Below are positions 9,673 to 51,626 of a stretch of DNA of 64,000 nt, piece by piece. The notes beneath the pieces were generated by a model. The model was not told the DNA's origin. It made no database searches and saw nothing but the letters and a program-made list of their open reading frames with translations. Location: NCBI GenBank assembly GCA_002269645.1, contig NIVC01003418.1, positions 9,758 through 73,757 of the forward strand, given 5' to 3'. The first letter of the stretch is position 1. Every line of letters starts with the position of its first letter. The position numbers and the translations under genes were made by a program. Origin of the DNA: Macrostomum lignano (Eukaryota).

Positions 9673-10383
9673 TCAGACCAAATAGAACTTGACCCAGTCC
9701 GCGCTCGTCTCGATCTCCGCCTCCACCTGAGCGTCGGTGAACAGCAGCAGGCGGCAGGCTCTCAGCTTGCTGTTGTACAGCACGTGTCTGCAGCTGGCGT
9801 CACTCATAGCGGCTGCAACGCACTCAACAGCGCTGCTCACATTCGGCACATCGATGAAGCAGTACTCGGTGTTGTAGATGGCTCTCTTGAACGACACCTT
9901 CCATTTGGCGAACCTCAGATCCGCAGAGGGATGTGTGTACTCGCAAGCGTATCCATAGTTACGGTTGCAACTGGTGTCTCTGAGCAGTCCAAGTTCGTTC
10001 ATCCGAATGCAGTTTTCATCAGCACCTCCTGATGGTTCGCTTGTGCGAAACAGACTTTCAGGACTGGCGATGCCGTTTCCGTTGACCCTCTGCCAGCCGT
10101 CTCTCTTCTTGCCTCTTTCATCGGCCAGGTCGCTCAGTCCGAGCCACAGCTGGCAGCTGCAGGATGAGCTGATGCCGCTGCGATTCAGTGCCTGGATGAA
10201 GCTCTGCGAGTTGACGAGCTCACCTCCGATCGATGCGCACTGCCGATTGGCTGAGCACCAGCTGTGGCTGTGAGCTGTGCTCACGAACAGGCACAGACCG
10301 GCCTGCTGCATGGTGAACGGTGCGGGACACGGCAGGGTCTGCGACTGCAGCAGCTGGCAGCTCAGCAGCAGCAGCAGCAGCAT
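9673..10383 (-). CDS. Secreted C-type lectin + PAN/Apple domain protein (copy A), 236 aa, intronless
   Basis: Leu-rich signal peptide; CTL domain (C...WCSANRQC...LWLGLSD...EPSGGADENC...DTSC...YACE); C-terminal PAN-like segment (YC...SSAVECVAAAMSDASCRHVLYN...CRL). Confidence 0.85.
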   Translation of the reverse strand: MLLLLLLSCQLLQSQTLPCPAPFTMQQAGLCLFVSTAHSHSWCSANRQCASIGGELVNSQSFIQALNRSGISSSCSCQLWLGLSDLADERGKKRDGWQRVNGNGIASPESLFRTSEPSGGADENCIRMNELGLLRDTSCNRNYGYACEYTHPSADLRFAKWKVSFKRAIYNTEYCFIDVPNVSSAVECVAAAMSDASCRHVLYNSKLRACRLLLFTDAQVEAEIETSADWVKFYLV

Positions 10384-10989
10384 GGATGACTCACAGATCC
10401 GGTAAACGTATTCTGTAGCTAAATTCACTGAGGCTAAGCTAACCCTTACGGCAAAGGCAAAACAGTATACGGTTTTTGGAGCTAGAGTTTTACTTATTTA
10501 GAAAGTTTATTATAAAAAAATATTAGCCTGTTTCTAAAAGTGTTGACATTCGCTCAGGCGCTCACTGCTGAAGAGTTCTTGTGGCATCTGTACCGCATAT
10601 GTTTTTAGCTTCAAATTGCTGCATGATTCGTGAAGAAGCTGCTCAGAGCAGCAATTGATGATTGGCAAGCCAAATAAACAGTCTCGCAATTTCGTGACAG
10701 AAGGACGAGAATTGCAGCTCTAGTGCTGCAGCTGGATTGCTCTCAAGTTCGAGTGATTCAAACTTAGACCCGGTAAACATCTTTGACTTACTTTACTTAG
10801 GAGGGTTCCGGGCGTCCGGATACAGTGGGGAGGCGTTGCCGCCCATTTTGCCAACCCCTGGCGACCACGGGCAGCTAGTGCTGCGGTGTCACGCAGGGAG
10901 ATTCGGTAGTGAGTGCGGTCCCCTTCGGGGAGTCCATTCACAGAAGAAGTGCTCCGCATTCTCGACACCGGAGAGGCAGAAGGGGCAAT

Positions 10990-11147
10990 CCTCGCCTTGG
11001 GGGTGGGCCCTCAAAGGCGTTAATTGCACAAGCAGAGCCAAGCCGAGATTCCAATTGAGCTCCAATTAAATGCGACTGCACTTGGAATCGAGCCTGGGCC
11101 GCTGGTACATCAGAGCGCCGCGCTCGACCACTGGGCTACGGCCCCCT
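10990..11147 (-). mobile_element. SINE family B, 5' portion
   Basis: Same head and start of body as 17623-17780, in reverse complement. Confidence 0.8.
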
Positions 11148-11711
11148 TCTCACTAGATTTATTATCGAACATGTATAAATGAGGCCTTAGCAGCTAATAT
11201 ACAGCCTCTGATGGTTTTTTAATAGAACGAGCTGTCCTTCCCAATCTCTCCGAAGATAGTTTTGGCACGACTTAAAAATCAACGGCCTGTTTATTCCCGA
11301 GCGTGTTCCTAATTGAAAAACCAAGATTTCGCACACACTCGGCAACATGTTACAGTTTCCATCCCGAAACCAGTAGCTAACAAGTGGCCACTGGTCAAAA
11401 ATGCAACTCTCATCATAACTCTCCACTCTCTCTCCTCACCAGCCTAAGCTAGGGCCTCACTGAAATTGAGATAAATTATATAAGAAGACTCAACGACAAT
11501 AAAGATGCACGAAAAAACAATCTAGAATCTTCAATCCAAGACCCTCTTAAAACTCCATGCAGCCTACTAGAAATTCTTTCTTGCATCGATGCTTAGCAAG
11601 AGTTCGGGACAAATTTGGGGTAAGTCGAAAATTTCGATAGTAAAAATCATAATTAATTTTTTAACATCGCTTCGTCTCAAACTCGTCAGTTCAGTAGTGT
11701 TGCCAGATCAA

Positions 11712-12434
11712 TCAGACCAAATAGAACTTGACCCAGTCGGCGCTCGTCTCGATCTCCGCCTCCACCTGAGCGTCGGTGAACAGCAGCAGGCGGCAGGCTC
11801 TCAGCTTGCTGTTGTACAGCACGTGTCTGCAGCTGCCGTAAATCATAGCGGCTGCAACGTGTCACGTTATTTGATGTTGTCCGTGACCCTTAAAAGGCCA
11901 TCCCAAATGAATCGCAGTCAGTTGTGATAGGCGATTTGTGAACGGAGCACTTCATTCCATTTGGCGAACTGGCCGTAGAGGGGTCCTATGTGACAATCGC
12001 AAGCGAATCCAAAGAACTTAATTTCGCTTGGTGTCACTTTGGCAGTCCGAGTTTTCATGAAGGTGAGTTTTCAAGAGCAAGTCGATGGTTCGAGTTTGAG
12101 GGAAACAGACTTTCGGGACTGGCGAAGCCGTTTCCGTTGACCCTCTGCCAGCCGGCTCTGCTCCGGTTTCTCTCATCGGCCAGGTCGCTCAGTCCGAGCC
12201 ACAGGTCGCAGCCGCAGGATGAGCTGATGCCACTTCGATTGAGCGCCAGAATGGAGCCGTGCGAGTTGACGAGCTCACCTCCGATCGATGCGCACTGCGA
12301 TTGGCTGAGCACCAGCTGTGGCTGTGAGCTGTGCTCACGAACAGGCACAGACCGGCCTGCATGGTGAACGGTGTGGGACACGGCAGGGCCTGCGACTGCA
12401 GCAGCTGGCAGCTCAGAAGCAGCAGCAGCAGCAT
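11712..12434 (-). pseudogene. C-type lectin-PAN pseudogene (copy B)
   Basis: Near-identical 5' and 3' ends to copy A, but a 1-bp deletion near 12298 (CACTGCGATTGG vs CACTGCCGATTGG) and a degraded centre break the frame. Confidence 0.85.
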
Positions 12435-14745
12435 GGCTGACTCACAGATCCGGTAACGTATTCTGTAGCTAAATTTACTGCGGCTAAGCTAATCTCCAAA
12501 GCAGAGTTAAAACAGTATACGGTTTTTTAATTCGAGTTTTAGGTATTTAAAACAATTGTGGTGTCGTTTTTATTTGTCTGTTGCATTGAAGTGTTGAAAC
12601 TGTCTCAGGCTCTCTCTGCTCAAGAGTTCTTGTGGCATCCGTGTCGAAGATGTTCTTAAGCTTCAAATTGCTGAATGATTCGAGAAGAATTGCTTTTCTG
12701 ACCGAGCTGCGATTGGCGATTAGCAAGCTAAATAAACATTCTCGCAGTTTCGTGATAGAAGTGCGAGAATTTCTGTTTTGATGCTACCACTGGATTGCTC
12801 TCGAGTTCGAGTGATGCTTCACAACTGTGTAGGATGTTTAATCTTTTTTCAACAGCCTGATGGCTTGCCAGACTTAAGTGGCATATCAGAAACATCAGAA
12901 ACAAATTTCGGATCGAATAGTTGATAGACTGAACTGAAATTTGCTAATTTTTCCATACCTTTTGGTGCAATAGTTGTTTAAATAACGTATAATCACTATT
13001 GAATGCATTATTTAAATTGTTAACTCACTTTTTATGCTTAAAAAGTCCATCGCGGACTCGGTCGTTTCAGTTGGCAATTTTCTTCTTTATTAGAGGCAGG
13101 GGGCTGTGCGTATCCCAGCGCACTTTAAGCGACACTGTCACGCAACCGGCGAGAGGCATTGCTGCCCCTTCCGCCGACTCCCCTGAGCAGGCTGTCGCGG
13201 AATTCATTCATTTACTCATTCATTCAGTGCATATGTACCTGTGTGTACGGTGGTGGTTGTTTAGCCTAATATCGATTTATTTGCCGCTTTCAAACCACCC
13301 CCTCTGTTTGTGCGCTTTGCGCCGTTTTCCTACCCTTCTTATCTCTCTCAGCCTCCTAGGTTTTCACTCACCATTTTTTAAACATCTGCAAGGCCTTTCG
13401 TGACCTATCGTTTGTTTTTTCCGTTGCTCAGTCCGCAGGTCGAGCTCCATCATGCCAGGCACACAGCGCCAAGGAGCGTGCGAGTTGACGAGCACACCTC
13501 CGATCGATGCGCACTGCCGATTGGCTGAGCACCAGCTGTGGCTGTGAGCTGTGCTCACGAACAGGCACAGACCGGCCTGCATGGTGAACGGTGTGGGACA
13601 CGGCAGGGCCTGCGACTGCAGCAGCTGGCAGCTCAGAAGCAGCAGCAGCAGCATGGCTGACTCACAGATCCGGTAACGTATTCTGTAGCTAAATTTACTG
13701 CGGCTAAGCTAATCTCCAAAGCAGAGTTAAAACAGTATACGGTTTTTTAATTCGAGTTTTAGGTATTTAAAACAATTGTGGTGTCGTTTTTATTTGTCTG
13801 TTGCATTGAAGTGTTCAAACTGTCTCAGGCTCTCTCTGCTCAAGAGTTCTTGTGGCATCCGTGTCGAAGATGTTCTTAAGCTTCAAATTGCTGAATGATT
13901 CGAGAAGAATTGCTTTTCTGACCGAGCTGCGATTGGGCGATTAGCAAGCTAAATAAACATTCTCGCAGTTTCGTGATAGAAGTGCGAGAATTTCTGTTTT
14001 GATGCTACCACTGGATTGCTCTCGAGTTCGAGTGATGCTTCACAACTGTGTAGGATGTTTAATCTTTTTTCAACAGCCTGATGGCTTGCCAGACTTAAGT
14101 GGCATATCAGAAACATCAGAAACAAATTTCGGATCGAATAGTTGATAGACTGAACTGAAATTTGCTAATTTTTCCATACCTTTTGGTGCAATAGTTGTTT
14201 AAATAACGTATAATCACTATTGAATGCATTATTTAAATTGTTAACTCACTTTTTATGCTTAAAAAGTCCATCGCGGACTCGGTCGTTTCAGTTGGCAATT
14301 TTCTTCTTTATTAGAGGCAGGGGGCTGTGCGTATCCCAGCGCACTTTAAGCGACACTGTCACGCAACCGGCGAGAGGCATTGCTGCCCCTTCCGCCGACT
14401 CCCCTGAGCAGGCTGTCGCGGAATTCATTCATTTACTCATTCATTCAGTGCATATGTACCTGTGTGTACGGTGGTGGTTGTTTAGCCTAATATCGATTTA
14501 TTTGCCGCTTTCAAACCACCCCCTCTGTTTGTGCGCTTTGCCGCCTCCCCCGTTTTCCTACCCTTCTTATCTCTCTCCTAGCCTACCTAGCCCCCCCACC
14601 CCCAAATTTTCACTCACCATTTTTTTAATACAAAATATATTGACCGTGCAAGGCCTTTCGTGCCTATCGTTTGTTTTTTCCGTTGCTCATCCTAAAGTTA
14701 AACAAATCGACTCCAAAATAACAACACAGGCACACAAGCGCAAGG
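12254..14745. repeat. About 1.22-kb tandem segmental duplication
   Basis: 12254-13474 is almost identical to 13475-14700 (offset 1220-1221). The junction near 13473 joins SINE B sequence to lectin CDS. Confidence 0.9.
13475..13654 (-). pseudogene. C-type lectin 5' fragment (copy C)
   Basis: Signal peptide and first CTL residues, truncated at the duplication junction. Confidence 0.85.
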
Positions 14746-14990
14746 ATACGTACGCAGTCATACGCACAGGCACACACTCACACAAGAGTGTACAGCGGCT
14801 CTAACTTTATTTATCGTTAGTCATGTACACTTTACTGTGTTTTGGGGGTTGGCCTTGAAGGGCGTCAATTGCACGAGCAGAGCCAAGCCGAGATTCCAAT
14901 TTAGCCCTAAATTAATGTAACTGCACTTGGAATCGAGCCTGGGCCGCTGGCACACCAGAGCGCCGCGCTGGACCACTAGGCTACGGCCCC
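14311..14990 (-). mobile_element. SINE family B interrupted by an unrelated insert of about 310 bp
   Basis: SINE 3' part at 14311-14413 and 5' part at 14725-14990 flank non-SINE sequence. The 3' part is duplicated at 13090-13192. Confidence 0.75.
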
Positions 14991-15103: not shown

Positions 15104-17073
15104 TTAATAGCCTTTCCTATTGGCAATGTAAGCGGCAAGGTTTTTGTTCGATGCCAGAACGCGTTCGCGATGAGCTGCCAGCTGAGGGAAGCTGGACATC
15201 AGGCGGCGCGCCTCCGGTCCCATGCAGTCAACGAAGTCAAGCAGGTTGATGATGGCCAGATCAGCTAAAGTGAGCGAGTCTCCAACGGCGAATCCACCGC
15301 TGCTGCCGGAGTCCTGCATCAACTTCACCAGGCTGGCAAAATGGCGCGGTCCTTTGGCTTCGAGGAACTCCTGCTTGGCAGCTTCTCGACTCCCCGCAGG
15401 ACCGTACAGCGCTGGAGCGATTGCTTCTTCGGCGAAATCGGTAATCTGAATGTAGGAAATCGGTAATCTGAATGTTGGAAATCGGTAATCTGAATGTAGG
15501 AAATCGGTAATCTGAATGTTGGAAATCGGTAATCTGAATGTTGGAAATCGGTAATCTGATCTGAATGTTGGAAATCGGTAATCTGAATGTTGGAAATCGG
15601 TAATCTGATCTCAATGTTGGAAATCGGTAATCTGAATGTTGGAAATCGGTAATCTGATCTGAATGTTGGAAATCAATAATCTGAACGTTAGAAATCGTTA
15701 ATCTGAATGTTGGAAATCGGTAATCTGAACTGGAAATTGTTTAGCTCCGCGAGTTAAAGATTGCTCAAATCAATGTACAGACACATTTTAAAATAGATAT
15801 ACTTTCATCCAGACACAATAGCTATTAGTTTTGGCCATTATTCCACAGATTACTCCCCAATGTACACAAATTTTATCACGTGACTGTTTCCCGATGTTTA
15901 TCATGTATCAAACCTCTAGCCTTATGGTTGCATTAGCGTGAAATAAGTGTGAAACAATGGCACCTATGCAGTGTGTAGCATACGTCGTAGTTAAAGAATG
16001 GCCCGAAACCTGTATCATTATTCAGCCCAGCTACATGAACATACTGAACGATCTACCCTTCCTTATTTCACGCGGATGCTAAGATAAAAAAGAGAGTTGA
16101 ATACGTGGGGAAGGCAGTCACGTGATGAATTTTTCGTACCTGTGGTAAATATGAATAGCGGGTGCAACTGTTGAATAATGGCCAAAACTAATGGCTATTA
16201 TTGTGTCTCATGCATCATGCACACATGCACAATAATCATGCATACTCGTAGTAGTGCAGAACAGCTGTTTCAAAATGCTCAGTGCTAATAGAATGCGCTT
16301 GTTTAACTTCATTTGCTGTTCAATTTTACCCTACGCACCGTTGTATCGAACTGTAGAGCAATTTGACAACAGATAGGTATATGGAAGAGAACCTTGCTTT
16401 AGCTCACATGCGAGAGCGTCCGTCTGCTAAGACATTGTGTAGAATAAAGACTATTATAATATATTGTTGTTGCACTCGCTGATGCAGGCAATCAAAAATA
16501 TTATTTCAAAAGAAGGTGAAGTCTGATGAGATGATAATGCATCTTGATACGGTTTCTTCGCTAATTTTGCGTCGGTATAGCCTGAAGACACGAATTTTTC
16601 GACAAATGTTCCGCAGGGTGGACAAACTTTTGTTGCCTCAGGGGGTAGCTACAAAAGTAACAGAGCTGAGAAGAGAAACAAACCTTGAGCGGGCCGGATT
16701 GCTATTGTGAAGTCTCAGCGAAATAGAGGGAGTTTGCCGACCTCCAGCTGTTCTAGAGTTCATGTACTCGTATATATGTACTCACCTGATAGATCAATCG
16801 ATCCACAAGGTAGCACTCAAATGGATCGCTGCTCATCAAGTTGAACCTCTTAGCCAGCAGGGCAGCTATGGGATTGCTCTGCACCAGCGTGCTACCTGTC
16901 ACCGGGTCATCCAGGAAGGGCGCTACTCCGGTTGGCGCCATCGCCTTGTACTTGGCCATCCATTCGTTTCTGCTGAACCGGATGTCCTGAAACTCGACGC
17001 CTGCCGCAGCGAGCACAAGCCTAATGACTTCCGCTCTGCCGCGCATGTCGAAGTAGTACAGCTTGTAGCTCAT
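15104..17073 (-). CDS. Glutathione S-transferase, sigma-like (GST1), 209 aa, 2 exons
   Basis: Exon 1 17073-16786 ([19 protein letters not shown]...LVQSNPIA..., donor CAG|GTGAGT). Exon 2 15445-15104 (ITDFAEE...[16 protein letters not shown]...RKGY*). Phase 0 intron. Confidence 0.92.
15436..15731. repeat. 22-bp tandem array made of the GST1 3' splice junction
   Basis: About 13 units of GAAATCGGTAATCTGAATGTTG (some 27 bp). On the minus strand each reads ...CCAACATTCAG|ATTACCGATT. Confidence 0.92.
15811..16208. mobile_element. MITE-like element in the GST1 intron
   Basis: Terminal inverted repeats of about 32 bp (AGACACAATAGCTATTAGTTTTGGCCATTATTC / GAATAATGGCCAAAACTAATGGCTATTATTGTGTCT) and an inner inverted repeat ATCACGTGACTG / CAGTCACGTGAT. 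Confidence 0.75.
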
Positions 17074-17622
17074 CATGTAGATCGCCTTGCGGGAACTGGT
17101 GACAAAATGTATTTTCCTTGGAAAAAATAGTTTCGGTCTCTTTAATTCGATGCGTCTACTGCATCTATCTGTTATTATAGGTACCAATGAAACAGAAGTG
17201 AAAGCCGCACTTCGGGGAATTTTTATAAAATGCTACACTGAGTCCGGGGTAAGGGATAGAGTTTGCACACTGCTCAGCCTTGAAGTAACTAGTTCGTTAG
17301 TACTCGTAAGCTGTTTTGCTCGCGAGGAAGCACTAAACTAAGCAGCTGTTGCAAACTGCACATGCAGGGTGTGCGTTTTCTCTTTTTATTTTTGCCGCAA
17401 AAGTAAAAAATCTGACCGCAATTTCACCCAAACACGTGGAGGCCACTATAGCTAGTACTGTTTAGCATAGATTTGTTGTGGAATATTTTAAAATACAAGT
17501 TATTGTAAGACTGCATTCCTCTAATCTCCCTTAATTGACGCTGATAATGGTTGGTAGTTCTGATTAAATTTTTTAACTACGGTACTTAAGTTTCGATTTA
17601 AGTCATTAGCAAACGTTTCCTA

Positions 17623-17988
17623 AGGGGGCCGTAGCCCAGCGGTAGCGCAGCTGCTCTGGTGTGCCAGCGACCCAGGCTCGATTCCAAGTGCAGTCACATT
17701 AATTTGGGGCTGAATTGGAATCTCGGCTTGGCTCTGCTTGTGCAATTAACGGCCTTGAGAGCCAACCCCCAAGGCGCAGTGAAGTGTACATGCCTAACGA
17801 TAATATAAAGTTAGGGCCGCTGTACACTCCTGTGTGAGTGTGTGCCTGCGTACGTATCCGCGCGCTTGTATGCCTGCTCAGGGGAGTCGGCGGAATGGGC
17901 AGTAATGCCTCTCGCCGGTTGTGTGCCTATGTCGCTTAAAGTGCGCCAGGGTGCACACAACCCCCCTGCCTCTAATAATAATAATAAA
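17623..17988 (+). mobile_element. Full-length SINE family B (tRNA-Gln-like head) with 12-bp TSD
   Basis: Head GGGGCCGTAGCCCAGCGG...CTCTG...CCAGCGACCCAGGCTCGATTCC; (TAA)n tail; AAACGTTTCCTA duplicated at 17611-17622 and 17989-18000. Confidence 0.92.
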
Positions 17989-18257: not shown

Positions 18258-19392
18258 CTAGAACGGCAGCGCTCCCGGTTTCCGGTTGGCCAGATAGTCG
18301 GCCAGTTTCTTGTTCGACTCGAGCGCGTGCTTCCGGTGGGCGGCGAACTCCGCGAAGCCGGCCGCGAGCTCCTGGGCTTCGGGGCCGATGAACTCCATGA
18401 AGTCGATCAGGTTGATAAGGGCCAGGTCGGCCAAGGTGAGGCTCTTTCCAGCTGCGGCGAACTTCGAGTCGGAGGCCTCCCGCAGGTACCCGGCCAGGAT
18501 GCCGAAATGGTAAGGCGCCTTGGTCTCCAGGAATTCCTTCTTGAAAGCTGGACGCTTCTCCTCCGGGCCAAATAGTATGTCGATGGCGAGGTTCTCGATG
18601 TCCGTGAGCTTTTCGGTGTAGGGGAACGGAGCAAAGGTTCTAGCTTTTATACTAGTAAATCTTTTTAATATGATATTTGATTGACGAAGGCTCGTTCAAT
18701 TGACCTAATTAAACGAACTAAAGCTCAAAGCTCAATGGACAGTTCATAATAAAAATATAATTTTAATTTATTACACCTGCAATAATACAGATGTGCAACC
18801 GACAGCTCAGCCGCAGCTATTTGCGCAGCGCATCTGAAGGCTGCGTACGGCTGTTCAGTCCAAGGACTGGGGGGTCGCCACACACACTCTCAATGACCCC
18901 AGCCAATGCTGGCACCCATTTTATAGCTGAGTGAACTGAAGCGAACCCCCCGACCTTTCAGTTGTAAGTCCGACACCCTAACCACTAGGCCTCAACCCCT
19001 CTATTTAACAGCCACAGAAAAAAATTTATGGTTTGAAAAGCTACTGTTTTGTCAGTAGTTTGTAAGAAAATTTCCTACTTATGGTTGAACCCCGAAGCGC
19101 TAACCTGGTGCAGGATTCTCTCAACTCTGTAGAACTCCTGGTCATCGCTGGCTGCCAGGCCGAATCTCGCAGCCAGCAGTCTGGCGATGGCGCCACTTTG
19201 CACCAGCGTTTTCCCGGTCACCGGGTCGACCAAGTACGGACACAAGCCCGTAGGCGAGATCGCCCTGTACTTGCTTTCCCATTCTTCCAAATCGAATCGA
19301 ATGTCTTCGAAATCGACCCCAGCGGCTGCGAAGACCAGACGGATAATTTCTCCACGTCCGCGACCGTCGAAGTAGTACAGCTTGTAGCTCAT
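18258..19392 (-). CDS. Glutathione S-transferase, sigma-like (GST2), 212 aa, 2 exons
   Basis: Exon 1 19392-19105 ([19 protein letters not shown]...[12 protein letters not shown]..., donor CAG|GTTAGC). Exon 2 18608-18258 ([14 protein letters not shown]...[15 protein letters not shown]...RKPGALPF*). Same intron position as GST1. Confidence 0.93.
18790..18999 (-). mobile_element. SINE family A (internally deleted) in the GST2 intron
   Basis: Matches 35028-35310 (AGATGTGCAACCGACAGCTCAGCCGCAGCTATT..., ATGCTGGCACCCATTTTA, CTAACCACTAGGC). Confidence 0.8.
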
Positions 19393-19761
19393 GACTGCGA
19401 GTTGTCTGGGCTCTGGGGTGACTGCGTGGCGCACACTTCAACAGCTAGCTCTAGCGTTTATAATTGTTTTCAGTCGCGCGCTGTTATCGCAATTGACTGC
19501 TTTCGGAAGATAAAGACTGGTTTAGCTGGGTCCTATTTTGCTCTATCTTCTGCTTGTTGTTGCTCGTCACTGCCTGTCCTGTTATCTTGTACATTTAGCT
19601 ACTAGCGTGTTCAATTCATAGGCTGTAAAAGAGTTACTACTAGATAGTACTAATACCCCTTTATTCCATTAGGTTGAAATTGTTCAAACTGAAATTTGTC
19701 TAATCCTTAACGGGCAAAGACTGGTGCTAAAATGTCTGTTTGGGTCCGTCTTGTCTGTCGG

Positions 19762-20140
19762 GTTAAATGCCTTGGGTTAATGCCTTGGGTTAATGCCTTG
19801 GGTTAATGCCTTGGGTTAATGCCTTGGGTTAATGTCTTGGGTTAATGCCTTGGGTTAATGTCTTGGGTTAATGTCTTGGGTTAATGCCTTGGGTTAATGT
19901 CTTGGGTTAATGTCTTGGGTTAATGCCTTGGGCTAATGCCTTGGGTTAATGTCTTGGGTTAATGCCTTGGGTTAATGCCTTGGGTTAATGCCTTGGGTTA
20001 ATGCCTTGGGTTAATGCCTTGGGTTAATTCCTTGGGTTAATGCCTTGGGTTAATGCCTTGGGTTAATGTCTTGGGTTGATGCCTTGGGTTAATGCCTTGG
20101 GTTAATGCCTTGGGTTAATGCCTTGGGTTAATGCCTTGGG
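19762..20140. repeat. 14-bp minisatellite, about 27 copies
   Basis: Unit TTGGGTTAATG(C/T)CT. Confidence 0.95.
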
Positions 20141-20680: not shown

Positions 20681-21406
20681 ATGTCAATGAAGCAGCTGCT
20701 GCTGCTGCTGCTTCTGAGCTGCCAGCTGCTGCAGTCGCAGGCCCTGCCGTGTCCCGCACTGTTCACCATGCAGGCCGGTCTGTGCCTGTTCGTGAGCACA
20801 GCTCACAGCCACAGCTGGTGCTCAGCCAATCGGCAGTGCGCATCGATCGGAGGCGAGCTCGTTAACTCGCACAGCTCCATCCTGGCGCTCAATCGCAGCG
20901 GCATCAGCTCATCCTGCAGCTGCCAGCTGTGGCTCGGCCTGAGCGACCTGGCCGATGAGAGAAACCGGAGCAGAGCCGGCTGGCAGAGGGTCAACGGAAA
21001 CGGCTTCGCCAGTCCCGAAAGTCTGTTTCCCTCAAACGAACCATCAGGACTTGCTGTTGAAAACTGCATTCGGATGAACGAACTCGGACTGCTCAAAGAC
21101 ACCAATTGCAAATTAAACTTTGGATTCGCTTGCGAGTACAAGGACCCCTCTGCGGATCCGAGGTTTGCCAACTGGAAGAAAGTGTCGTTCAAGAGAGCCA
21201 TCTACAACTCCGAGTACTGCTTCACGGATGTGCCGAATGTGAGCAGCGCTGTTGAGTGCGTTGCAGCCGCTATGATTTACGGCAGCTGCAGACACGTGCT
21301 GTACAACAGCAAGCTGAGAGCCTGCCGCCTGCTGCTGTTCACCGACGCTCAGGTGGAGGCGGAGATCGAGACGAGCGCCGACTGGGTCAAACTTAAAATG
21401 CTGTGA
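20681..21406 (+). CDS. Secreted C-type lectin + PAN protein (copy D), 241 aa
   Basis: Intact ORF with signal peptide, CTL domain (EPSGLAVENC) and PAN-like C-terminus. Confidence 0.87.
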   Translation: MSMKQLLLLLLLSCQLLQSQALPCPALFTMQAGLCLFVSTAHSHSWCSANRQCASIGGELVNSHSSILALNRSGISSSCSCQLWLGLSDLADERNRSRAGWQRVNGNGFASPESLFPSNEPSGLAVENCIRMNELGLLKDTNCKLNFGFACEYKDPSADPRFANWKKVSFKRAIYNSEYCFTDVPNVSSAVECVAAAMIYGSCRHVLYNSKLRACRLLLFTDAQVEAEIETSADWVKLKML

Positions 21407-22814: not shown

Positions 22815-23350
22815 TCATCTCCCAGACAGCAGGCATCCCCCAGATAGCAAGCATCCCCAAGATAGCAAGCATCCCCCAGATAGATAGCATCCCCCAGATA
22901 GATAGCATCCCCCAGATAGCAAGCATCCCCCAGATAGATAGCATCCCCCAGATAGCAAGCATCCCCCAGATAGCAAGCATCCCCCAGATAGCAAGCATCC
23001 CCCCAGATAGATAGCATCCCCCAGATAGATAGCATCCCCCAGATAGATAGCATCCCCCAGATAGCAAGCATCCCCCAGATAGATAGCATCCCCCAGATAG
23101 CAAGCATCCCCCAGATAGCAAGCATCCCCCCAGATAGCAAGCATCCCCCCAGATAGCAAGCATCCCCCAGATAGATAGCATCCCCCAGATAGATAGCATC
23201 CCCCAGATAGCAAGCATCCCCCAGATAGATAGCATCCCCCAGATAGCAAGCATCCCCCAGATAGCAAGCATCCCCCAGATAGCAAGCATCCCCCCAGATA
23301 GCAAGCATCCCCAAGATAGATAGCATCCCCCAAATAGATAGCATCCCCCA
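22815..23350. repeat. 19-20 bp minisatellite
   Basis: Unit CCCCCAGATAG(CA/AT)AGCATC. Confidence 0.93.
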
Positions 23351-23773: not shown

Positions 23774-24514
<741 letters not shown>

Positions 24515-29802: not shown

Positions 29803-29834
<32 letters not shown>

Positions 29835-31939: not shown

Positions 31940-32149
31940 AGACAGAAGCCCAGGACTTTATTGAATTACCGAACCGAAACTGCAGATACCAATTTATTAA
32001 TGAGTTTTTCTCGTTAAGTTAAAATCAATTTCTATTTCGAAATACAATCGGTTCAGTGCATCGCAAAAGAAATCCGAAGTCAACACGCTTTCTTTGATTT
32101 CCAAAACAGATTTTGAATTTGCAAAAACAATATTTAAATTACAGTCATA

Positions 32150-35310: not shown

Positions 35311-35639
35311 ACCAGCTCCGCCAGCTTGGTATCAAAGTAAGCTTAATAAAATCATTAAAGCGCTTAAACTAAAATCCTGCATCGAAACGAAATTGAGAAA
35401 TGCAAATAAAACAGTAGGCCTACTATTGCTGGATATCAGTAATAAATATAGAGTAACATTACATCTGATTAGAAAGTGCATGTAAAATGATACAAGAAGA
35501 AGTGTATGTTATGCTTGATAAGGAAAAAGGCTAACTCGGTATTCAGTGCTGTAGTAAAAACTGAAGCGAGCAAGGGTGTATTTTATTTCTTGCCCAGAGA
35601 GAGGAAGGGCCTCTCTCTTCTTTCGGGGAAACACACTGC

Positions 35640-36060
35640 AAGGAATCCAGGAAGTCCAAAAAAATTCGCTCACGAATTGGGGTCCGTTGTCGCTGATGAG
35701 CACCTTGGGAACCTCCCAGCGGTTGAACAGCTTCCTGAGCGCCCTGCAGATGCTTGACGATGTCACCATCTCGATAGCTGCGATCTCTTTGCCATTTTCT
35801 GTGCAGGTCATGCACAACCAGCAGGAATCGCTGATGTGCCACGGGGCTGCGACAATCTCACCAAAGTTGCCAACCCCAGTCCTTGCCTCAGTCTTGTTCC
35901 ACGGTTGCTTGGGCCGCTCGACGGGAGTCACATGATTGTCTGTTGCGTCTTGTCGGACTTTCCGCCAGTATGCAAGCTGGGCAGTTCTTGACATGGTTCT
36001 CAACCATAGGCTTCCAGATTCGCCATAGGCTTCCAGCCGTGTGTCCGATGGCAACAGTGG
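35640..36060 (-). mobile_element. Gypsy-type LTR retrotransposon integrase remnant (frameshifted)
   Basis: Pieces across frames: MVENHVKNCPAC (zinc finger), PKQPW, RFLLVVHDLHRKW, TSSSICRALRKLFNRWEVPKVLISDNGPQFVSEFF (rve core). Confidence 0.85.
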
Positions 36061-36178
36061 TTTGTGCCCAAAGTGCTTCTTATGAGTTCAGATTCAAGGG
36101 GGGACACCGCAGCTCCGCAATCGATCTGCACTCGGATCGTTGGATCGAATGAAGCATTTAGTTCATTCTTGGAAATCA

Positions 36179-36829
36179 ATGCTGCAGTCGCAGACCCTGC
36201 CGTGTTCGGTACCGTTCACCGTGCAGGCCGGTCTGTGCCTGTTCGTGAGCACAGCTCACAGCTACAGCTGGTGCTCAGCCAATCGGCAGTGCGCATCGAT
36301 CGGAGGCGAGCTCGTCAACTCGCACAGCTCCATCAAGAAGTTTCGAATGGGAGAAATCCCCAGTGTCACCTGCAGCTGCGGCCTGTGGCTCGGACTGAGC
36401 GACCTGGCCGATGAGAGAAACCGGAGCAGAGCCGGCTGGCGAAGGGTCAACGGAAACGGCATCTTCCCGGAGAACAGCATGCCGTCTAGGCAGCCGTCTG
36501 GAAGAGACAAATTTCACTGCATGCGATTCACTACTTGCCGTTTTCTTGCCGATTCGAATTGCAGAAAGAATTTTAGATTCGCCTGCGAGTTCGCGGGCGA
36601 TGCCCGACCGTCAACTGCCGCCGCCTTCAAGCGAGAGAGTTTCAACTCCGAGTACTGCTTCGCCGATGTGCCGCATGGGAGCAGCGCTGTTGAGTGCGTT
36701 GCAGCCGCTATGATTGACGCCAGCTGCAGACACGTGCTGTACAACAGCAAGCTGAGAGCCTGCCGCCTGCTGCTGTTCACCGACGCTCAGGTGGAGGCGG
36801 AGATCGAGACGAGGAAAGGTCAAACTTAA
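36179..36829 (+). pseudogene. C-type lectin-PAN copy F, lacking the signal peptide and with an altered C-terminus
   Basis: ATG is followed directly by LQSQ (Leu run lost). Short internal deletions. A 3' deletion gives ...ETRKGQT* instead of ...ETSADWVKLKML*. Confidence 0.7.
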
Positions 36830-38651: not shown

Positions 38652-39383
38652 ATGATGCAGCCATTGTTGCTGCTGCTGCTCCTGCTGAGATGCCAGCTGC
38701 TGCAGTCGCAGGGCCTGCCGTGTCCCGCACCGTTCACCGTGCAGGCCGGTCTGTGCCTGTTCGTGAGCACAGCTCAAAGCCACAGCTGGTGCTCAGCCAA
38801 TCGGCAGTGCGCATCGATCGGAGGCGAGCTCGTCAACTGGCACAGCTCCATCCAGAAGTTTCTAAGGGGGGAAATCCCCATTGCCATTCGCACCTGCGAA
38901 CTGTGGGTCGGACTGAGCGACCTGGCCGATGAGAGAAACCGGAGCAGAGCCGGCTGGCAGAGGGTCAACGGAAACGGAATCTTCCCGGAGGACAGCAGCC
39001 TGTTTTACACCACTGATCCGAATGGTGGAGATACCAACAACTGTCTCCGACTGTTTCATGGTGTAACCCTGGCTGACTCGAACTGCAAAGCGAACTTCGG
39101 GTTCGCCTGCGAGTTCGCGGGCGATGCCCGACCGCCAACCGCCGGCGTCTGGACGGCCGCTGCCTTCAAGCGAGAGAGCTTCAACTCCGAGTACTGCTTC
39201 ACCGATGTGCCGAATGTGAGCAGCGATTTTGAGTGCGTTGCAGCCGCTATGATTGACGCCAGCTGCAGACACGTGCTGTACAACAGCAAGCTGAGAGCCT
39301 GCCGCCTGCTGCTGTTCACCGACGCTCAGGTGGAGGCGGAGATCGAGACGCGCGCCGACTGGGTCAAGTTCCGACTTGAGTGA
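38652..39383 (+). CDS. Secreted C-type lectin + PAN protein (copy G), 243 aa
   Basis: Intact ORF; CTL loop DPNGGDTNNC; PAN-like C-terminus. Confidence 0.87.
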   Translation: MMQPLLLLLLLLRCQLLQSQGLPCPAPFTVQAGLCLFVSTAQSHSWCSANRQCASIGGELVNWHSSIQKFLRGEIPIAIRTCELWVGLSDLADERNRSRAGWQRVNGNGIFPEDSSLFYTTDPNGGDTNNCLRLFHGVTLADSNCKANFGFACEFAGDARPPTAGVWTAAAFKRESFNSEYCFTDVPNVSSDFECVAAAMIDASCRHVLYNSKLRACRLLLFTDAQVEAEIETRADWVKFRLE

Positions 39384-39559
39384 AGACAGAAGCGCAGGAC
39401 CTTGAATTACCGACCCGAAACTGATGAGATTTTCTCTCGCCAATTAAAAATCAAATTCCATCTCAAAATACGATGGGTTCCATGCATCGCAAAAGAAATC
39501 CGAAGTCCTACGCATTCCTTTGAGTTACAAACAGATTTTGAATTTGAAATTACATGGGA

Positions 39560-39870
39560 AGCACAGTCGGTGGTCCAGGCGGTCCAGACTCGATTTCAAG
39601 TGCAGTGAATTAATTTGGGGGTTAAATTGGAGTCCCAGCTTGGCTCTGCTCGTGCAATTAACTCCCAGCTTGATGGCCAACCCCTAAGACACAGTGAAGT
39701 GTACATGCGTAACGATTAAGTTAGGGTCGCTATGCACTCCTGTGTGAGTGTGTGCCTGTGCGTATGACTGCGTACTGCTTGTGTGCCTGCTCAGGGGAGT
39801 CGGCGGAATGGGCAGTAATGCCTCTCGCCGGTTGTGTGACAATTTCGACTTAAGAGCCCCCTGCCTCTAA
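39560..39870 (+). mobile_element. SINE family B (degenerate head)
   Basis: Body matches 17660-17975. Confidence 0.8.
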
Positions 39871-40081: not shown

Positions 40082-41126
40082 CAGGGACGTCGCAACCGGG
40101 GGGGGGACAAAGGGGACATGTTCCCCCCAGTAAAAGCTATGGGGGGAGATGAAAATGCTTCGCACCCCATCCCACCTTGCGACCTGTTTTGGAAAGCAAT
40201 AATTTTGTTTCAGGCCGGCGCTAAAAGGAGTGGCTGCGGCGCTAAAAGGAGTGGCTGCGGCGCTAAAAGGAGTGGCTGCGGCGCTAAGAGGAGTGCCTGC
40301 GGCGCTAAAAGGAGTAGCTGCGGCGCTAAAAGGAGTGGCTGCGGCGCTAAAAGGAGTGCCTGCGGCGCTAAAAGGAGTGGCTGCGGCGCTAAAAGGAGTG
40401 GCTGCGGCGCTAAAAGGAGTGCCTGCGGCGCTAAAAGGAGTGCCTGCGGCGCTAAAAGGAGTGCCTGCGGCGCTAAAAGGAGTGCCTGCGGCGCTAAAAG
40501 GAGTGGCTGCGGCGCTAAAAGGAGTGGCTGCGGCGCTAAAAGGAGTGCCTGCGGCGCTAAAAGAAGTGCCTGCGGCGCTAAAAGGAGTGCCTGCGGCGCT
40601 AAAAGGAGTGCCTGCGGCGCTAAAAGGAGTGCCTGCGGCGCTAAAAGGAGTGCCTGCGGCGCTAAAATGAGTGCCTGCGGCGCTAAAAGGAGTGGCTGCG
40701 GCGCTAAAAGGAGTGCCTGCGGCGCTAAAAGGAGTGCCTGCGGCGCTAAAAGGAGTAGCTGCGGCGCTAAAAGGAGTGGCTGCGGCGCTAAAAGGAGTGC
40801 CTGCGGCGCTAAAAGAAGTGCCTGCGGCGCTAAAAGGAGTGCTGCGGCGCTAAAAGGAGTGGCTGCGGCGCTAAAAGGAGTGCCTGCGGCGCTAAAAGGA
40901 GTGGCTGCGGCGCTAAAAGGAGTGCCTGCGGCGCTAAAAGGAGTGCCTGCGGCGCTGCGGCGCTCAAAGGAGCGGCTGCGGCGCTAAAAGGAGTGCCTGC
41001 GGCGCTAAAAGGAGCGTGATAACACGATTCTTAAAATAATATAGATGTAGGAATTTAGTCATGTTACATGTAAAATACTCTGCTTTGTCCATTCCTCCCC
41101 CAAAAAAATCCATGGCGACGCCCCTG
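40082..41126 (+). mobile_element. hAT-type MITE with an internal 21-bp minisatellite (about 37 units, 40215-41010)
   Basis: TIRs CAGGGACGTCGCAA / TGGCGACGCCCCTG; degenerate 8-bp TSD GCAGTTAT / ACAGTTAA. Confidence 0.82.
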
Positions 41127-42277: not shown

Positions 42278-44313
42278 GTGAGCTGGTTCACTGCTGATGA
42301 TGAGTCAATTGACGGATCCAAAGTTGAAAATCCCCATAGTGACCAAGAAGAAGGGCAGGATGAGTCACTTGTAGGAGAACAGTGGCATCTTTTTGAAGAT
42401 GGCGCTGATGCCAGGCCAGCACCTCTGCCTGAGTTCCTCGGAGTACCAGGAGTCAGGCCCGATATGCAGCTTCCTGAGATCGCCGACGGAAACGAGAGTG
42501 ACTTTATCAAGCTGTACGAGGGCTGAGCAATAAGTTTCAGATTTCAGAATCTGATTTTGTCAGATTTTGTCAGCCGCCTCTCAACTATGCACATCCGGAA
42601 ACTTATTGCTCAGCCCTCGCATTTGACGGACGGGTTGATGGAGAACATCAAGAACTGGACAAACGCAAAGGTTTGGAAGACCTATGAGGATAACTTTGAC
42701 GGTGGAACAGTCCCAAATTTTGTGCTGAACTGGAAGGACTGCACGGTTAATGAAGTAAGAAAATTGATCGGAATTGTTTTGCTGATGGGACTGGACAAGA
42801 AGCCTGAAATATCGAGCTATTGGTCGCAAGATCCGGCTTATCACTGTGCATTTCTTGCTGAGCCTTGTTCTCTTCCTAGAGACAGGTTCAAGCAGATCTT
42901 GTCCTGTTTTCGCTTTTACGATTGCACTGAGGCTCTGCACGGGGGTCCCTTGGCTAAGACGCAGCCTTTTCTGCAACAGGCTAAGCAGCTGTGCAGCAAC
43001 AACTACATGCCTCGTCAGCGGCTCTCGATTGACGAAAGTCTCGTGCTGTACAAGGGAAGACTGTTGTTCAAGCAGTACATCCCAACGAAGAGCAGTAAAT
43101 ACGGAATCAAGATGTACTGCCTTTGTGAGTCCGACATGACCTACCTGTGGAATTTTGAGTCCATACATCAACTGAAGCCAACCAATTGTTCGGTGATGGA
43201 CTGGGCTGTCAAAATTTGTCCATGAGTGAGAGAGTTGTGGCTGAGTTGTGCCGCAATTTGCTTTACCTAGGCTACCATATTTTCACAGACAGTTGGTTCA
43301 CTTCGCACAGACTTGCTACGTGGCTGCTGCAACGGAATGTTCTTCTCACTGGCACAGTGCGCAAAAACCGCGGCATCCCAAACCTGTTGCAGACTGTAAA
43401 TCTGCAGCCAACTTCTTCCGCCTTTGCACGCTCTGGAAACGTGCTTGTCTGCAAGTTTACTGACAGGAAACAGAGTGGCGTCAAGACTGTTTTCGTATTG
43501 GACACCGCTGGATCGGCCGAATGTAGGCAGGTTCAGCGCACTCGTCGTGGCGGCGGCGTTCAGATCGTCACCAAACCGACTAGCGTGCTCTCGTACTCTA
43601 ACAGCATGGGTGGCGTCGACCACATGGATTCCGCTCTACCAATCGGCCAATCGAAAAAGCATCCGGTGGTTCCACAAACTCGGGTTTCACCTGATCCTGC
43701 TGCTCATTCGCAACGCTTGGATTGTCTACCAACAGGCAGGTGGCAGCAAGACTTTTCTGCAGTTCTTGAGACAGGCTATTAAATATTGGTTGAGGATACC
43801 GGTGATGCTAGGCGACGTGGAGCCCGGCCTCGTAGAGTTGGTGTGGGTGCCGGAGCTGCGGCAGGTGCGGGTGCCGGAGCTGCAGCAGGTGCGGGTGCCG
43901 GAGCTGCAGCAGGTGCGGGCGCCGGAGCTGCGGCAGGTGCGGGTGCCGGAGCTGCAGCAGGTACGGGTGCCGGAGCGGCAGCAGGTGCGGATGCCGGAGC
44001 GGCAGCAGGTGCGGATGCCGGAGCGGCAGCAGGTGCGGATGCCGGAGCGGCAGCAGGTGCGGATGCCGGAGCGGCAGCAGGTGCGGATGCCGGAGCGGCA
44101 ACAGGTGCGGGTGCGGCAGTCGGTGTGGGCGTTCATTTGCCGACTAAGGCGCCAATACAAGGAGCTCAAAGCCGCCCACGCAAGCGCTGCCGGATGTGCT
44201 ATCAGCATGGCGTGGTGAAAAGAACAGTGACTGTTTGTGCCGCTTGTCGAGGAGTTCCTGCATTATGTTTGGGTGCTTGCTTTGCTTGCTGGCACATGGT
44301 TCATCCTAACTGA
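42278..44313 (+). pseudogene. piggyBac (PGBD4-like, DDE_Tnp_1_7) transposase pseudogene
   Basis: Catalytic motifs SIDESLV, IFTDSWFTS and GGVDHMD; KYGIKMYCLC; C-terminal Cys-rich domain CRMC...CAAC...LCLGACFACWH. Frameshifts near 43158, 43640 and 43790, plus a MITE insertion. Confidence 0.9.
42517..42619. mobile_element. 103-bp mariner-type MITE inserted in the piggyBac transposase
   Basis: TA|CGAGGGCTGAGCAATAAGT ... ACTTATTGCTCAGCCCTCG|CA. Removing it restores FIKLYLTDGLMENIKNWTN. Confidence 0.88.
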
Positions 44314-49509: not shown

Positions 49510-49905
49510 GGCCTTACTGAGAACCAGGAACGCCTCATCGACGAGGAACTCTGTGATCCAACTAACATTGACGACATTTCTCTGTTGCGTGAGTTGACCT
49601 CTGAAGAACAAGATCTGCGACAGGCAGAGGAGGATAGCAAGCGAAAGTCTACCACCAAGCAGACGGAACAACATATTCAAAAGTTCTAAAAGTTTCTGAT
49701 GGAGGAGGGAATGCAAACCGACATTGACAGCATCAGATGCTGGTTCAAATTCTCTTTCGAACTGAAAATGATAGCCATTAGCAATCCAGTTGGCGAAGCA
49801 CCTAGATCGTTTGGCAACTGAAAGTTCGAAAACTGTAACTTCAACATCACCCCCAACAAGTTGGAGTGTCTGATCGAGCAGACTGAACTTTTGGCATTTT
49901 TGAGA
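49510..49905 (+). mobile_element. Probable Crypton (tyrosine recombinase / DUF3504-related) remnant
   Basis: One frame gives ...EEDSKRKSTTKQTEQHIQKF*KFLMEEGMQTDIDSI... and FGN*KFENCNFNIT. These resemble, from memory, the N- and C-terminal segments of Crypton/KCTD1-like proteins with the catalytic middle deleted. Confidence 0.5.
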
Positions 49906-50692
49906 AAATGATGCGTCCCCTACTTCACGTATACGTAAATAAGAGCTATATTTATTAGCTCACGTTTCGTTAGAATCTGTTATTCCGGAAATTGATTTTG
50001 CTGGTTTACTCGCCTTTTTCCAAAGAGAGGCATAAATATAAATAATATATGCCATTTGGTTTGGCCATAGACTTTGGCCGCGGGCAAACATCGTTGGCTT
50101 CACCCTCATTTCGGCCTGCCATAGTACCCGCCCCGCTTCAAAGCAAAACTCCTCCAGATAGCAGATTTCGGCTAGCAATTATGTGCAAACTTGAACAGCC
50201 TCAGCTTCCGCGTACCCTTACTGCTTGGAATGTTAAGCAAAGTTAGATTGCGATGGGGGCATTTCGGTGCTGCCAAGAATCAAGACGACGGTTGACCCCG
50301 CATCCATCGAGGTGGCCATGCCAGCAGTCCCCGCCCATTCTGCTGACCCTGGGCACGCACGCAGGTGCATATGCAGATGCAAGACTTGAAAAGAATACGC
50401 TATAAAAATAAACTGCCTAGCCCGATCGTTCTACAGCCTTTCTACACCACAGACACAGCAACACAGGGATGCAGTGCGACATCTATAGTCAAAAAGGTTC
50501 AGTAGATAAACCGTCACATACATGTACAGCAAATTTGACATAAATAGTGTGTTAAAAAGGCATTTTAATCCACTCTTTAGCATATAATTGCATCCAAGTG
50601 TTAAGAAACCTGCCAGATGCCAAGCTTTGATTAGTACAGGCGTACGGATTCGAGAACGAAGCCGCAATGGCTAGATCGACTTGAGCGTTGAA

Positions 50693-50879
50693 CCAATGAG
50701 AGCAGGGAGCGGAGCAGGCAGGTTTACAAGATCGGCTATTTAAGTTGCGCCCGACGCTGGCTGAATGCGCTTTAACTCGTTGAGGTCGCCAGAGTTGCGC
50801 CTTGAGCATTGGTAACGTTTGCCGGAGAGTAAAGGGAAAATTATCCTTAGAAACTATTTTCTAATTCGGAAAACCGCAG
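50693..50879 (+). promoter_or_regulatory. Putative promoter and 68-nt 5'-UTR intron of lectin H
   Basis: CCAAT at 50693, TATTTAA at 50737, GTAACG...GCAG at 50812-50879. Paralogous to the region upstream of G. Confidence 0.55.
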
Positions 50880-50912
50880 AAGAGCATCCGATCTAGAATT
50901 TGCGAAAAATCA

Positions 50913-51626
50913 ATGATGCAGCCATTGCTGCTGCTGCTGCTGCTGCAGTCGCAGGCCCTGCCGTGTCCCGCACCGTTCACCATGCAGGCCGGTCTGTGCC
51001 TGTTCGTGAGCACAGCTCACAGCCACAGCTGGTGCTCAGCCAATCGGCAGTGCGCATCGATCGGAGGCGAGCTCGTCAACTCGCACAGCTCCATCAAGAA
51101 GTTTCGCATGGGGAAAATCCCCAGTGCCATCTGCAGCTGCGACCTGTGGGTCGGACTGAGCGACCTGGCCGATGAGAGAAACCAGAACAGAGCCGGCTGG
51201 CGGAGGGTCAACGGAAACGGCATCTTCCCGGAGGACGGCAGCCTGTTTCACACTGGTGAGCCGAATGGTGGAGTTACCGACAACTGCCTCCGACTGCGCG
51301 CAGGCAAGACCCTGGCTGACTTCAACTGCAAATTGAGCTTCGGATTTGCCTGTGAGTTCGCGGACGATACCCGACCGCCGACTGCCGGCGTCTGGACGGC
51401 CGCTGCCTTCAAGCGCCAGAGCTTCAACTCCGAGTACTGCTTCACTGATGTGCCGAATGTGAGCAGCGATTTTGAGTGCGTTGCAGCCGCTATGATTGAC
51501 GCCAGCTGCAGACACGTGCTGTACAACAGCAAGCTGAGAGCCTGCCGCCTGCTGCTGTTCACCGACGCTCAGGTGGAGGCGGAGATCGAGACGAGCGCCG
51601 ACTGGGTCAAGTTCCGGCTTGAGTGA
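50913..51626 (+). CDS. Secreted C-type lectin + PAN protein (copy H), 237 aa
   Basis: Intact ORF; canonical mannose-type EPN loop (EPNGGVTDNC); PAN-like C-terminus. Confidence 0.87.
   Translation: MMQPLLLLLLLQSQALPCPAPFTMQAGLCLFVSTAHSHSWCSANRQCASIGGELVNSHSSIKKFRMGKIPSAICSCDLWVGLSDLADERNQNRAGWRRVNGNGIFPEDGSLFHTGEPNGGVTDNCLRLRAGKTLADFNCKLSFGFACEFADDTRPPTAGVWTAAAFKRQSFNSEYCFTDVPNVSSDFECVAAAMIDASCRHVLYNSKLRACRLLLFTDAQVEAEIETSADWVKFRLE

Follow-up and report, generated by a model that had tools for sequence, protein, structure and literature searches.

The closest described counterpart of the system treated here is mammalian. Among the natural killer (NK) cell receptor genes with C-type lectin-like domains (CTLDs), i.e. 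KLRC/NKG2, KLRA/Ly49, KLRB and KLRI, paralogues have been homogenised after speciation over part of the gene only, a phenomenon termed merohomogenization and recognised by a within-species similarity that exceeds the between-species similarity in the homogenised part only (Fossum et al. 2011, PMC3210942). We analysed a 64,000-nt stretch of the flatworm Macrostomum lignano (assembly GCA_002269645.1, contig NIVC01003418.1, positions 9,758 to 73,757; hereafter the window, whose own coordinates are used throughout) that holds eight copies, A to H, of a lectin gene with a CTLD and a C-terminal PAN/apple domain. As in the NK receptors (PMC3210942), the CTLD genes are clustered and their homogenisation is confined to part of the gene, and we consider partial concerted evolution of this kind, by interlocus gene conversion, to be the probable explanation of the cluster. 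The homogenised part is the opposite one: in NK receptors the ligand-binding domain is uniform and the signalling parts stay distinct, whereas in the flatworm copies the framework and the PAN core are uniform and the loops stay distinct. The flatworm genes are moreover single-exon, with tract limits not set by introns, and the host is a flatworm rather than a mammal. The cluster thus illustrates cleanly a mode of gene-family evolution that is already known and does not represent a new mechanism, and it shows with unusual clarity conversion that is restricted to parts of a gene within one exon.

Three looser analogues can be named. (i) The class I and II genes of the major histocompatibility complex (MHC), and other tandem immune families, undergo gene conversion while the diversity of their binding sites is maintained. 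They share with the flatworm copies interlocus conversion tracts, mosaic alleles and old binding-site lineages on a homogenised background, but MHC binding sites have a ratio of nonsynonymous to synonymous divergence (dN/dS) > 1 and show trans-species polymorphism, whereas the ratio here is 0.5-0.7 and the comparison is between paralogues of one assembly. (ii) Conopeptide and snake-toxin families have conserved signal, pro- or non-coding parts and hypervariable mature regions. Like the flatworm genes they surround a divergent functional segment of a secreted protein with constant segments that are near-identical, synonymous sites included; in the toxins, however, the centre is accelerated, with dN/dS well above 1, whereas in the flatworm the centres seem old and the arms rejuvenated. 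(iii) FREPs of Biomphalaria, Sp185/333 of sea urchins and VCBPs of amphioxus are diversified recognition families of invertebrates, alike in being clustered, secreted lectin-type genes with recombination mosaics. For those families there is evidence of immune induction, and FREPs and 185/333 reach a diversity beyond the germline, whereas the flatworm family is known here from sequence alone. On the tandem immune families of group (i), see also PMC12674619.

Constant blocks and variable cassettes

A tblastn search with family proteins located exactly eight lectin loci in the window, the number that an earlier, sequence-only reading had counted over 42 kb. They are tandem intronless paralogues, three on the minus strand and five on the plus strand, each a single open reading frame (ORF) of ~240 codons. 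Five are intact: A (9673-10383, -; 236 aa from its ATG, with signal peptide, CTLD and PAN/apple domain by ORF, Pfam and alignment), D (20681-21406, +; 241 aa), E (31223-31939, +; 238 aa), G (38652-39383, +; 243 aa from its ATG) and H (50913-51626, +; 237 aa). Copy B (11712-12440, -) is disabled in this assembly and F (36140-36829, +) is probably disabled, while C (13473-13653, -) is a 5' fragment limited to the gene's first ~180 nt.

Alignment of the seven full-length copies gives the gene a layout of three constant (C) and two variable (V) parts, C1-V1-C2-V2-C3. In copy D (+ strand), C1 (20724-20873) follows the signal peptide and covers strands beta0 to beta2 and helix alpha1 of the CTLD; it lies at 10203-10355 in A, 12258-12406 in B, 31251-31400 in E, 36177-36326 in F, 38695-38844 in G and 50938-51087 in H. 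This is the 5' block that had been called nearly identical, and rightly so: 150 nt long, it is 92-99% identical between pairs, with invariant runs of 36, 21 and 21 nt (alignment columns 433-585). V1 (20874-20915) is the alpha2 region as mapped on DC-SIGN. It is followed by C2 (20916-21003), the WIGL strand with GWxWxxG, a third constant block of ~88 nt and mean identity ~0.9 (WxGLSDLADERNRSRAGWQRVNGNG) which lies inside what the sequence-only reading took for the centre and was overlooked there. V2 (21004-21257) has three subsegments: V2a, which aligns to the long-loop region of the DC-SIGN carbohydrate-recognition domain (CRD) with Ca2+ site 2 and the EPN- and WND-equivalent positions, so that the expected ligand-binding loop does fall in the variable centre; V2b, the inter-domain linker; and V2c, with which the PAN domain begins and in which synonymous changes are again few. 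C3 (21257-21395) is the PAN/apple core and together with V2c makes up the PAN domain.

The variable parts are of two types, one in A, B and D and the other in E, F, G and H. The centre had been described as barely alignable, which overstates the case: identity is 55-60% between types and 78-95% within types, and the centre aligns well as protein. The same qualification applies to the flanks, described as clearly diverged: identity is at random level between types, yet those of A/B/C can be aligned with one another, as can those of E/G/H and the 3' flanks of D and F.

C3 contains an 88-nt block, the core of the PAN domain, claimed to be identical in A, B, D, E, F, G and H, and an exact search indeed found it in these seven copies with zero mismatches, on the minus strand at 9706-9793 (A) and 11745-11832 (B) and on the plus strand at 21286-21373 (D), 31819-31906 (E), 36724-36811 (F), 39263-39350 (G) and 51506-51593 (H). 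Invariant columns among the seven copies amount to 52.8% of 703 aligned coding columns; when columns were shuffled 10,000 times the longest invariant run had a mean of 9.4 and a maximum of 27, and the analytic expectation for a run of 88 is 3e-22. Read in frame, the block translates as CRHVLYNSKLRACRLLLFTDAQVEAEIET, so that about 29 third positions are identical in all seven copies. Even the disabled copies have no private change in it (0/88 each), as against 51/278 in V2 of F and 90/278 in V2 of B. Both arms contain runs resembling CTG repeats, namely (CTG)6-8 encoding the poly-Leu signal peptide (e.g. 20693-20723) and CGCCTGCTGCTG within the 88-nt block; that such repeats stimulate recombination in the arms is only an idea.

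Synonymous divergence along the gene was examined segment by segment with Nei-Gojobori counts of the proportions of synonymous (pS) and nonsynonymous (pN) differences, comparing A and D with E, G and H as the between-type contrast. Between-type pS is 0.031 in C1, 0.52 in V1, 0.145 in C2, 0.77 in V2a, 0.66 in V2b, 0.064 in V2c and 0.042 in C3. Synonymous divergence, for which a uniform course would have spoken against conversion, is thus strongly non-uniform along the gene. For the pair A-H, synonymous differences number 38/52 in variable and 4/92 in constant segments (p=1.7e-18, Fisher's exact test), and variable and constant segments differ with p from 3e-5 to 2e-18 in five of six pairs (G-H, E-H, A-H, D-G and D-E); the sixth, the same-type pair A-D, is non-significant (9/51 vs 7/93, p=0.094).

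The youngest pair, G-H, shows which part of the gene is unusual. Its non-coding flanks differ at 13-14%, its variable segments have a pS of 0.24 (14/57 synonymous differences) and its constant blocks 0.022 (2/92; variable vs constant p=3e-5). Since the constant blocks are far less diverged than the flanks (2/92 vs 84/638, p=8e-4), they are younger than the duplication itself, while the centre is not much faster than neutral. Synonymous divergence of the variable segments is of the same order as that of the neutral flanks, or somewhat above it, and dN/dS in the variable parts is 0.5-0.7 in every pair and never exceeds 1 over a segment of useful size (pN/pS in V2a is 0.47-0.83 in the close pairs tested). 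With dN/dS below 1 and flank-like divergence in the variable parts, the contrast comes from too little change in the constant blocks, silent and replacement alike, and not from a faster centre. The pattern that refutes uniform divergence therefore also removes the evidence for the diversifying selection on the centre that had been proposed; site models would have little power with seven recombining sequences.

These numbers bear directly on the alternative that the copies are young duplicates whose centre was driven apart by targeted hypermutation, strong positive selection or both, as proposed for cone-snail toxin genes. The sharp block boundaries, the high amino-acid divergence in the ligand-binding loops and the G-H variable segments, slightly above the flanks (14/57 vs 84/638, p=0.027), are what such a process would leave. 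Against it stand not only the dN/dS values but also the random-level identity of the flanks between types, which makes the loci old, a cassette with diagnostic indels common to an M. lignano paralogue and a foreign homologue (below), which places the origin of the types before the split of the two lineages, and the mosaic copies B and D, which require recombination in any case. We consider an accelerated centre improbable.

Exchange between copies, and relatives outside the window

Recombination was assessed by triplet informative-site counts in place of GENECONV or RDP. In copy D, A-like sites prevail from the signal peptide up to the 88-nt block (136:26) and F-like ones beyond it, through the last codons into the 3' flank (17:49; p=8e-17); in F the pattern is reversed (p=4e-11). 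Copy B is A-like in its 5' and 3' flanks (168:37) and D-like in its centre and C3 (1:35 in the centre; p=8e-21). Compared directly, B and D are ~97% identical over the first 345 nt, then comes a degenerate stretch of ~240 nt, and then 129 nt of 100% identity that contain codons found only in these two copies. The cassettes of A and D are ~90% identical though their flanks do not align at all. The exchanged tracts differ by 3-10%.

Junctions tend to lie at the constant blocks, in structural rearrangements as well as in the mosaics. Copy C sits in a tandem duplication of 1.22 kb that comprises the 5' end of B and ~1 kb of upstream DNA (12253-13430 and 13473-14689, 96% identical), whose inner junction is the C1/V1 boundary of the gene; this created the fragment, and its homology to the family ends 5 nt past C1. 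The homology of F begins at the first base of C1, leaving it without a signal peptide, and the switch between D- and F-type tails lies inside C3. Exchanges therefore resolve in constant blocks and can move a whole cassette to another locus. Together with the uneven synonymous divergence, these junctions bear out the proposal of repeated gene conversion with the constant arms as handles, at least in the sense that the arms are where exchanges end.

We suggest that ectopic gene conversion and unequal recombination would repeatedly overwrite the framework of C1, C2 and V2c-C3, which would give these parts a very recent coalescence, while V1 and V2a/b would escape homogenisation between types and so keep an old, synonymously saturated divergence. 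There are three cassette types, A/B/D, E/F/G/H and a third, 'X', elsewhere in the genome. With exchanges resolving in the constant blocks, cassettes are sometimes moved whole: B is an A-type locus with a D-type centre, and D an A/B-type body with an F-type 3' end. The mechanism is presumably gene conversion rather than some other homologous exchange, purifying selection on the framework and the homology dependence of conversion may set the tract limits, and functional differences may keep the cassette types apart. The GC content of third codon positions (GC3) reaches its maximum in C3 (0.91 for the window, 0.79 for the foreign homologue), against 0.45-0.79 and 0.48 in V2a, as expected from GC-biased gene conversion.

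The disabled copies B and F take part in these exchanges. The lesions of B are frameshifts, i.e. a 1-nt deletion in C1 and an indel-rich degenerate stretch of ~240 nt (~11856-12095). The M. lignano protein A0A1I8H0J8 in UniProt (P0001) corresponds residue for residue to an intact copy B, so the pseudogene status may be specific to a haplotype or an assembly error; B has either truly decayed with its arms refreshed by conversion or suffers from a local assembly error. In F a 5-nt deletion just past the 88-nt block alters the C-terminus, while the centre is still an open reading frame. A weak integrase-core (rve) fragment lies directly upstream of this 5'-truncated copy (35509-36054, -), and an insertion there may have removed its start. 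With their 100% identical arms, pseudogene copies B and F look like acceptors, though they may also have been donors.

Cassette swaps with junctions in the arms, and defective copies that adjoin intact ones and join the exchanges, are also what would be seen if the arms served a programmed system, somatic or germline, for shuffling cassettes from defective donors, comparable to immunoglobulin conversion in chicken or VSG switching in trypanosomes. The layout argues otherwise: there are five intact genes with their own diverged flanks and three defective copies, rather than one expression site fed by an array of donors, the cassette types number only two or three, and the 3-10% divergence of exchanged tracts points to rare events on an evolutionary scale. 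Programmed diversification is therefore extremely unlikely. A more general version, that the arms and especially the 88-nt block are dedicated recombination handles which shuffle lectin cassettes at a high rate in the germline or somatically, with the defective copies in the pool, could be read from the arms being more uniform than conversion and selection on the protein predict and from their synonymous conservation even relative to a foreign homologue (below), but it seems to us very unlikely; if it were true, the flatworm would have a repertoire-generating system built on CTLD-PAN genes.

Relatives outside the window allow the within-genome pattern to be set against another lineage. The nearest database proteins are from M. 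lignano, and two of them, A0A1I8JSG6 (P0020; annotated as a sodium/solute symporter) and A0A1I8F8G1 (P0005; annotated as a globin), are chimeric models with fused, partly frameshifted and more divergent family members, so the family has further loci. A foreign homologue, X (L001), is encoded on a 967-nt contig of a metagenome assembly in ENA; it is full-length and shares ~50% identity with the copies of the window. Over the variable segments A and D are 0.8-1.0 distant from E-H, as far as they are from X, whereas in C1 the window types are 0.03-0.05 apart and 0.28 from X. The C-terminal part of A0A1I8JSG6 shares the diagnostic insertions of X, and in V2 it is identical to X at 57/98 positions and to window copies at ~36/94; in C3, from the first codon of the 88-nt block onwards, it is window-like (36/37, vs 31/37 to X). 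Informative sites, window to X, are 7:24 in V2 and 5:0 in C3 (p=0.002, at the protein level). A protein that is X-like in V2 and window-like in C3 implies that the cassette types predate the split and that the block follows its genome, which is the signature of concerted evolution. Segment-dependent synonymous divergence, supported mosaics and, at the protein level, homogenisation within the genome relative to another lineage are thus all observed.

Several observations weigh against this account. First, the 88-nt block is more uniform than C1: the rate of C1 would predict ~11.5 private changes in it, and there are 0; conversion alone does not account for that extra uniformity. Second, where residues are identical to those of X, the fraction encoded by the same codon is 0.85 in C3 and 0.78 in C1, vs ~0.5 elsewhere (p=0.004 and 0.04), which could mean constraint on the nucleotides themselves. 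Third, cross-mapped reads may have produced part of the perfect identity during polishing. Finally, X comes from a metagenome contig, and the cross-species case for C3 relies on proteins of chimeric UniProt models.

The first two points are the ones that favour nucleotide-level constraint, under which the blocks, chiefly the 88-nt one, would function as DNA or RNA (as a target of small RNAs, an element for localisation or stability, or a signal for recombination) and synonymous changes would be selected out; the lack of any difference in seven copies, disabled ones included, and the lowered synonymous divergence from X in C3 and C1 would follow directly. The 3' block folds into no unusual RNA structure, however (z=+0.16 relative to dinucleotide shuffles), and no Rfam family matched anywhere in the window. 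X differs at 9/88 positions of the block, several of them synonymous, the amino-acid states of C3 track the genome and not the cassette type, as in homogenisation, the codon sharing in C3 and C1 is mostly due to the high GC3 of both lineages, and constraint cannot yield mosaics. We regard it as an unlikely explanation.

As for the assembly, blocks that are truly only similar (perhaps 95-98%) might have had the rest erased by polishing with multi-mapping reads, the degenerate stretch of B then being perhaps an unpolished patch. Suspicion is raised by the perfection of the 88-nt block beside C1 and by the 240 indel-rich nucleotides of B between perfect segments where the independent A0A1I8H0J8 is intact; in addition, exact look-ups of all window proteins, including alternative ATG starts of A and G, gave no match in a public collection of 15 billion proteins or in its contig index, and A0A1I8H0J8 is recorded without a contig. 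But copy-specific variants are retained as close as 2 nt upstream and 1 and 6 nt downstream of the block, and throughout C1, so that polishing evidently told the copies apart there, and independent M. lignano protein models have the same block peptide. X, too, is ~90% identical in the block and ~50% elsewhere, and polishing can make neither the heterogeneity of synonymous divergence nor mosaics that span hundreds of bases. An artefact as the main cause is quite unlikely. Such families are nevertheless where assemblies and gene models fail: in UniProt, relatives are modelled as fusions with a globin and a symporter, and one copy here is perhaps mis-assembled. Partial concerted evolution by interlocus conversion would account for three homogenised framework blocks between old, saturated cassettes, with the swap junctions visible inside the blocks.

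Protein architecture and predicted ligand site

Intact copies encode a predicted secreted protein of ~240 aa with a poly-Leu signal peptide, one CTLD and one C-terminal PAN/apple domain; to our knowledge no characterised protein has this architecture of one CTLD plus one PAN domain at this length. Membership in the CTLD superfamily is given by the Lectin_C match, a WIGL-type motif and the cysteine framework. Pfam profile PF00059 (Lectin_C; cut-off 22.6 bits) scores 24.0-31.2 bits in A, D, E, G and H, with the maximum of 31.2 in A, and 21.3 in F, and a profile of the family matches the CRDs of DC-SIGN with E=1.6e-10. The WIGL-type motif reads LW[LV]GLSD, and the cysteines align with the DC-SIGN framework (C-x..C in beta0/beta1, the alpha1 Cys, and C125/C139/C147 in copy H numbering).

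The assignment of the C-terminal domain to the PAN/apple type is probable. PAN_1 scores 14.3-18.5 bits in the window copies (18.5 in A), a weak match under the curated cut-off of 21.4, while a distant relative of the same architecture (P0004) reaches 24.8 bits, above the Pfam cut-off, and another (P0003) 20.8. A profile of the C-terminal 75 residues matches the apple/PAN structures 4a5v (TgMIC4 of Toxoplasma, 1.3e-5), 6ryv (5.5e-4) and 2yil (3.4e-3); the matches named are the Toxoplasma MIC4 apple domain, a fungal PAN domain, a Sarcocystis microneme protein and the N domain of HGF. Four of the usual PAN cysteines are present, but the flatworm copies differ from the apicomplexan and HGF domains in having Ala in place of the second Cys of the C-x3-C pair.

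Sites were mapped by hidden Markov model alignment to the DC-SIGN CRD, as AlphaFold2 models of copy H were too poor for fold search or site mapping (predicted local distance difference test 39.6 alone and 44.5 with a 10-sequence alignment). The EPN-equivalent triplet is EPS in A and D, QPT in E, QPS in F, DPN in G and EPN in H, the sole copy with the canonical motif, and the WND-equivalent is L[KRA]D (LAD, LKD or LRD) in all copies, which replaces the Asn ligand. Hence, although the match to the CRDs of DC-SIGN/CD209 is good at the profile level, no copy has the complete Ca2+ site 2 (EPN or QPD, the following E, and WND). The canonical sugar site being incomplete, Ca2+-dependent carbohydrate binding is a hypothesis only: sugar binding by the copies is possible but not predicted with confidence, and the proteins may bind glycans or other extracellular ligands. 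A role as a pattern-recognition repertoire would follow from domain type only. Variation of the EPN-equivalent between copies poses the testable question of whether the cassette types bind different ligands.

An exhaustive profile search returned 102 proteins at E<1e-30, including dozens of unnamed end-to-end matches of ~240 aa, which suggests that the CTLD-PAN architecture is widespread but uncharacterised. The cluster thus defines a previously uncharacterised family of small, predicted secreted CTLD-PAN proteins in a regeneration model, with dozens of unnamed relatives in public assemblies. Metagenome scans with degenerate family patterns and with a 30-mer common to X found no relatives, and in the literature on Macrostomum with C-type lectins or gene conversion we found no report on this lectin family.

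Other features of the window

Long antisense ORFs overlie the lectin genes, e.g. 51036-51719 (-), 38862-39443 (-) and 9646-10032 (+). Antisense coding was rejected, since the extent of the ORFs varies among copies and that of D misses the 88-nt block; we take them for a side effect of the GC3-rich codon usage and not for genes.

A dispersed repeat of ~230-370 nt, 78-89% identical among its copies, occurs at 8861-9223, 10994-11330, 14727-14990, 17622-17976, 32143-32400 and 39569-39853, several of these downstream of lectin copies A, B, E and G at a distance of a few hundred bases. It may be an element like a short interspersed nuclear element or a miniature inverted-repeat transposable element that travelled with the duplicated units; a tRNA-derived label was dropped, as ARAGORN finds no tRNA in it.

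Between the inverted halves of the lectin cluster lie two ORFs with GST_N matches in Pfam, 16753-17187 (-; E=3e-8) and 19075-19434 (-; E=1e-10), which are probably exons of two paralogous glutathione S-transferase genes. Mobile elements are represented by retroelement remnants, namely the integrase-core fragment upstream of F and an RNase H/reverse transcriptase-like ORF (28093-28884, +), and by a piggyBac-type transposase at 42557-43225 and 43186-43782 (+; DDE_Tnp_1_7, E=3e-35 and 8e-16), which is split over two frames and so carries a frameshift. A 24-nt minisatellite comes after the transposase.

Long micro- and minisatellite arrays, such as (AGCC)x184, a 21-mer x81 and an 87-mer x6, give spurious long ORFs and strong local GC skew. 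Examples lie at 6964-7506, 19760-20140, 22816-23350, 23774-24514, 25538-27221, 29800-30263 and 33803-34346, and further ones at 40216-40956, 53647-54666, 57595-58578, 59653-60884, 61692-62583 and 62898-63527. This very high satellite load agrees with the character of the M. lignano genome.

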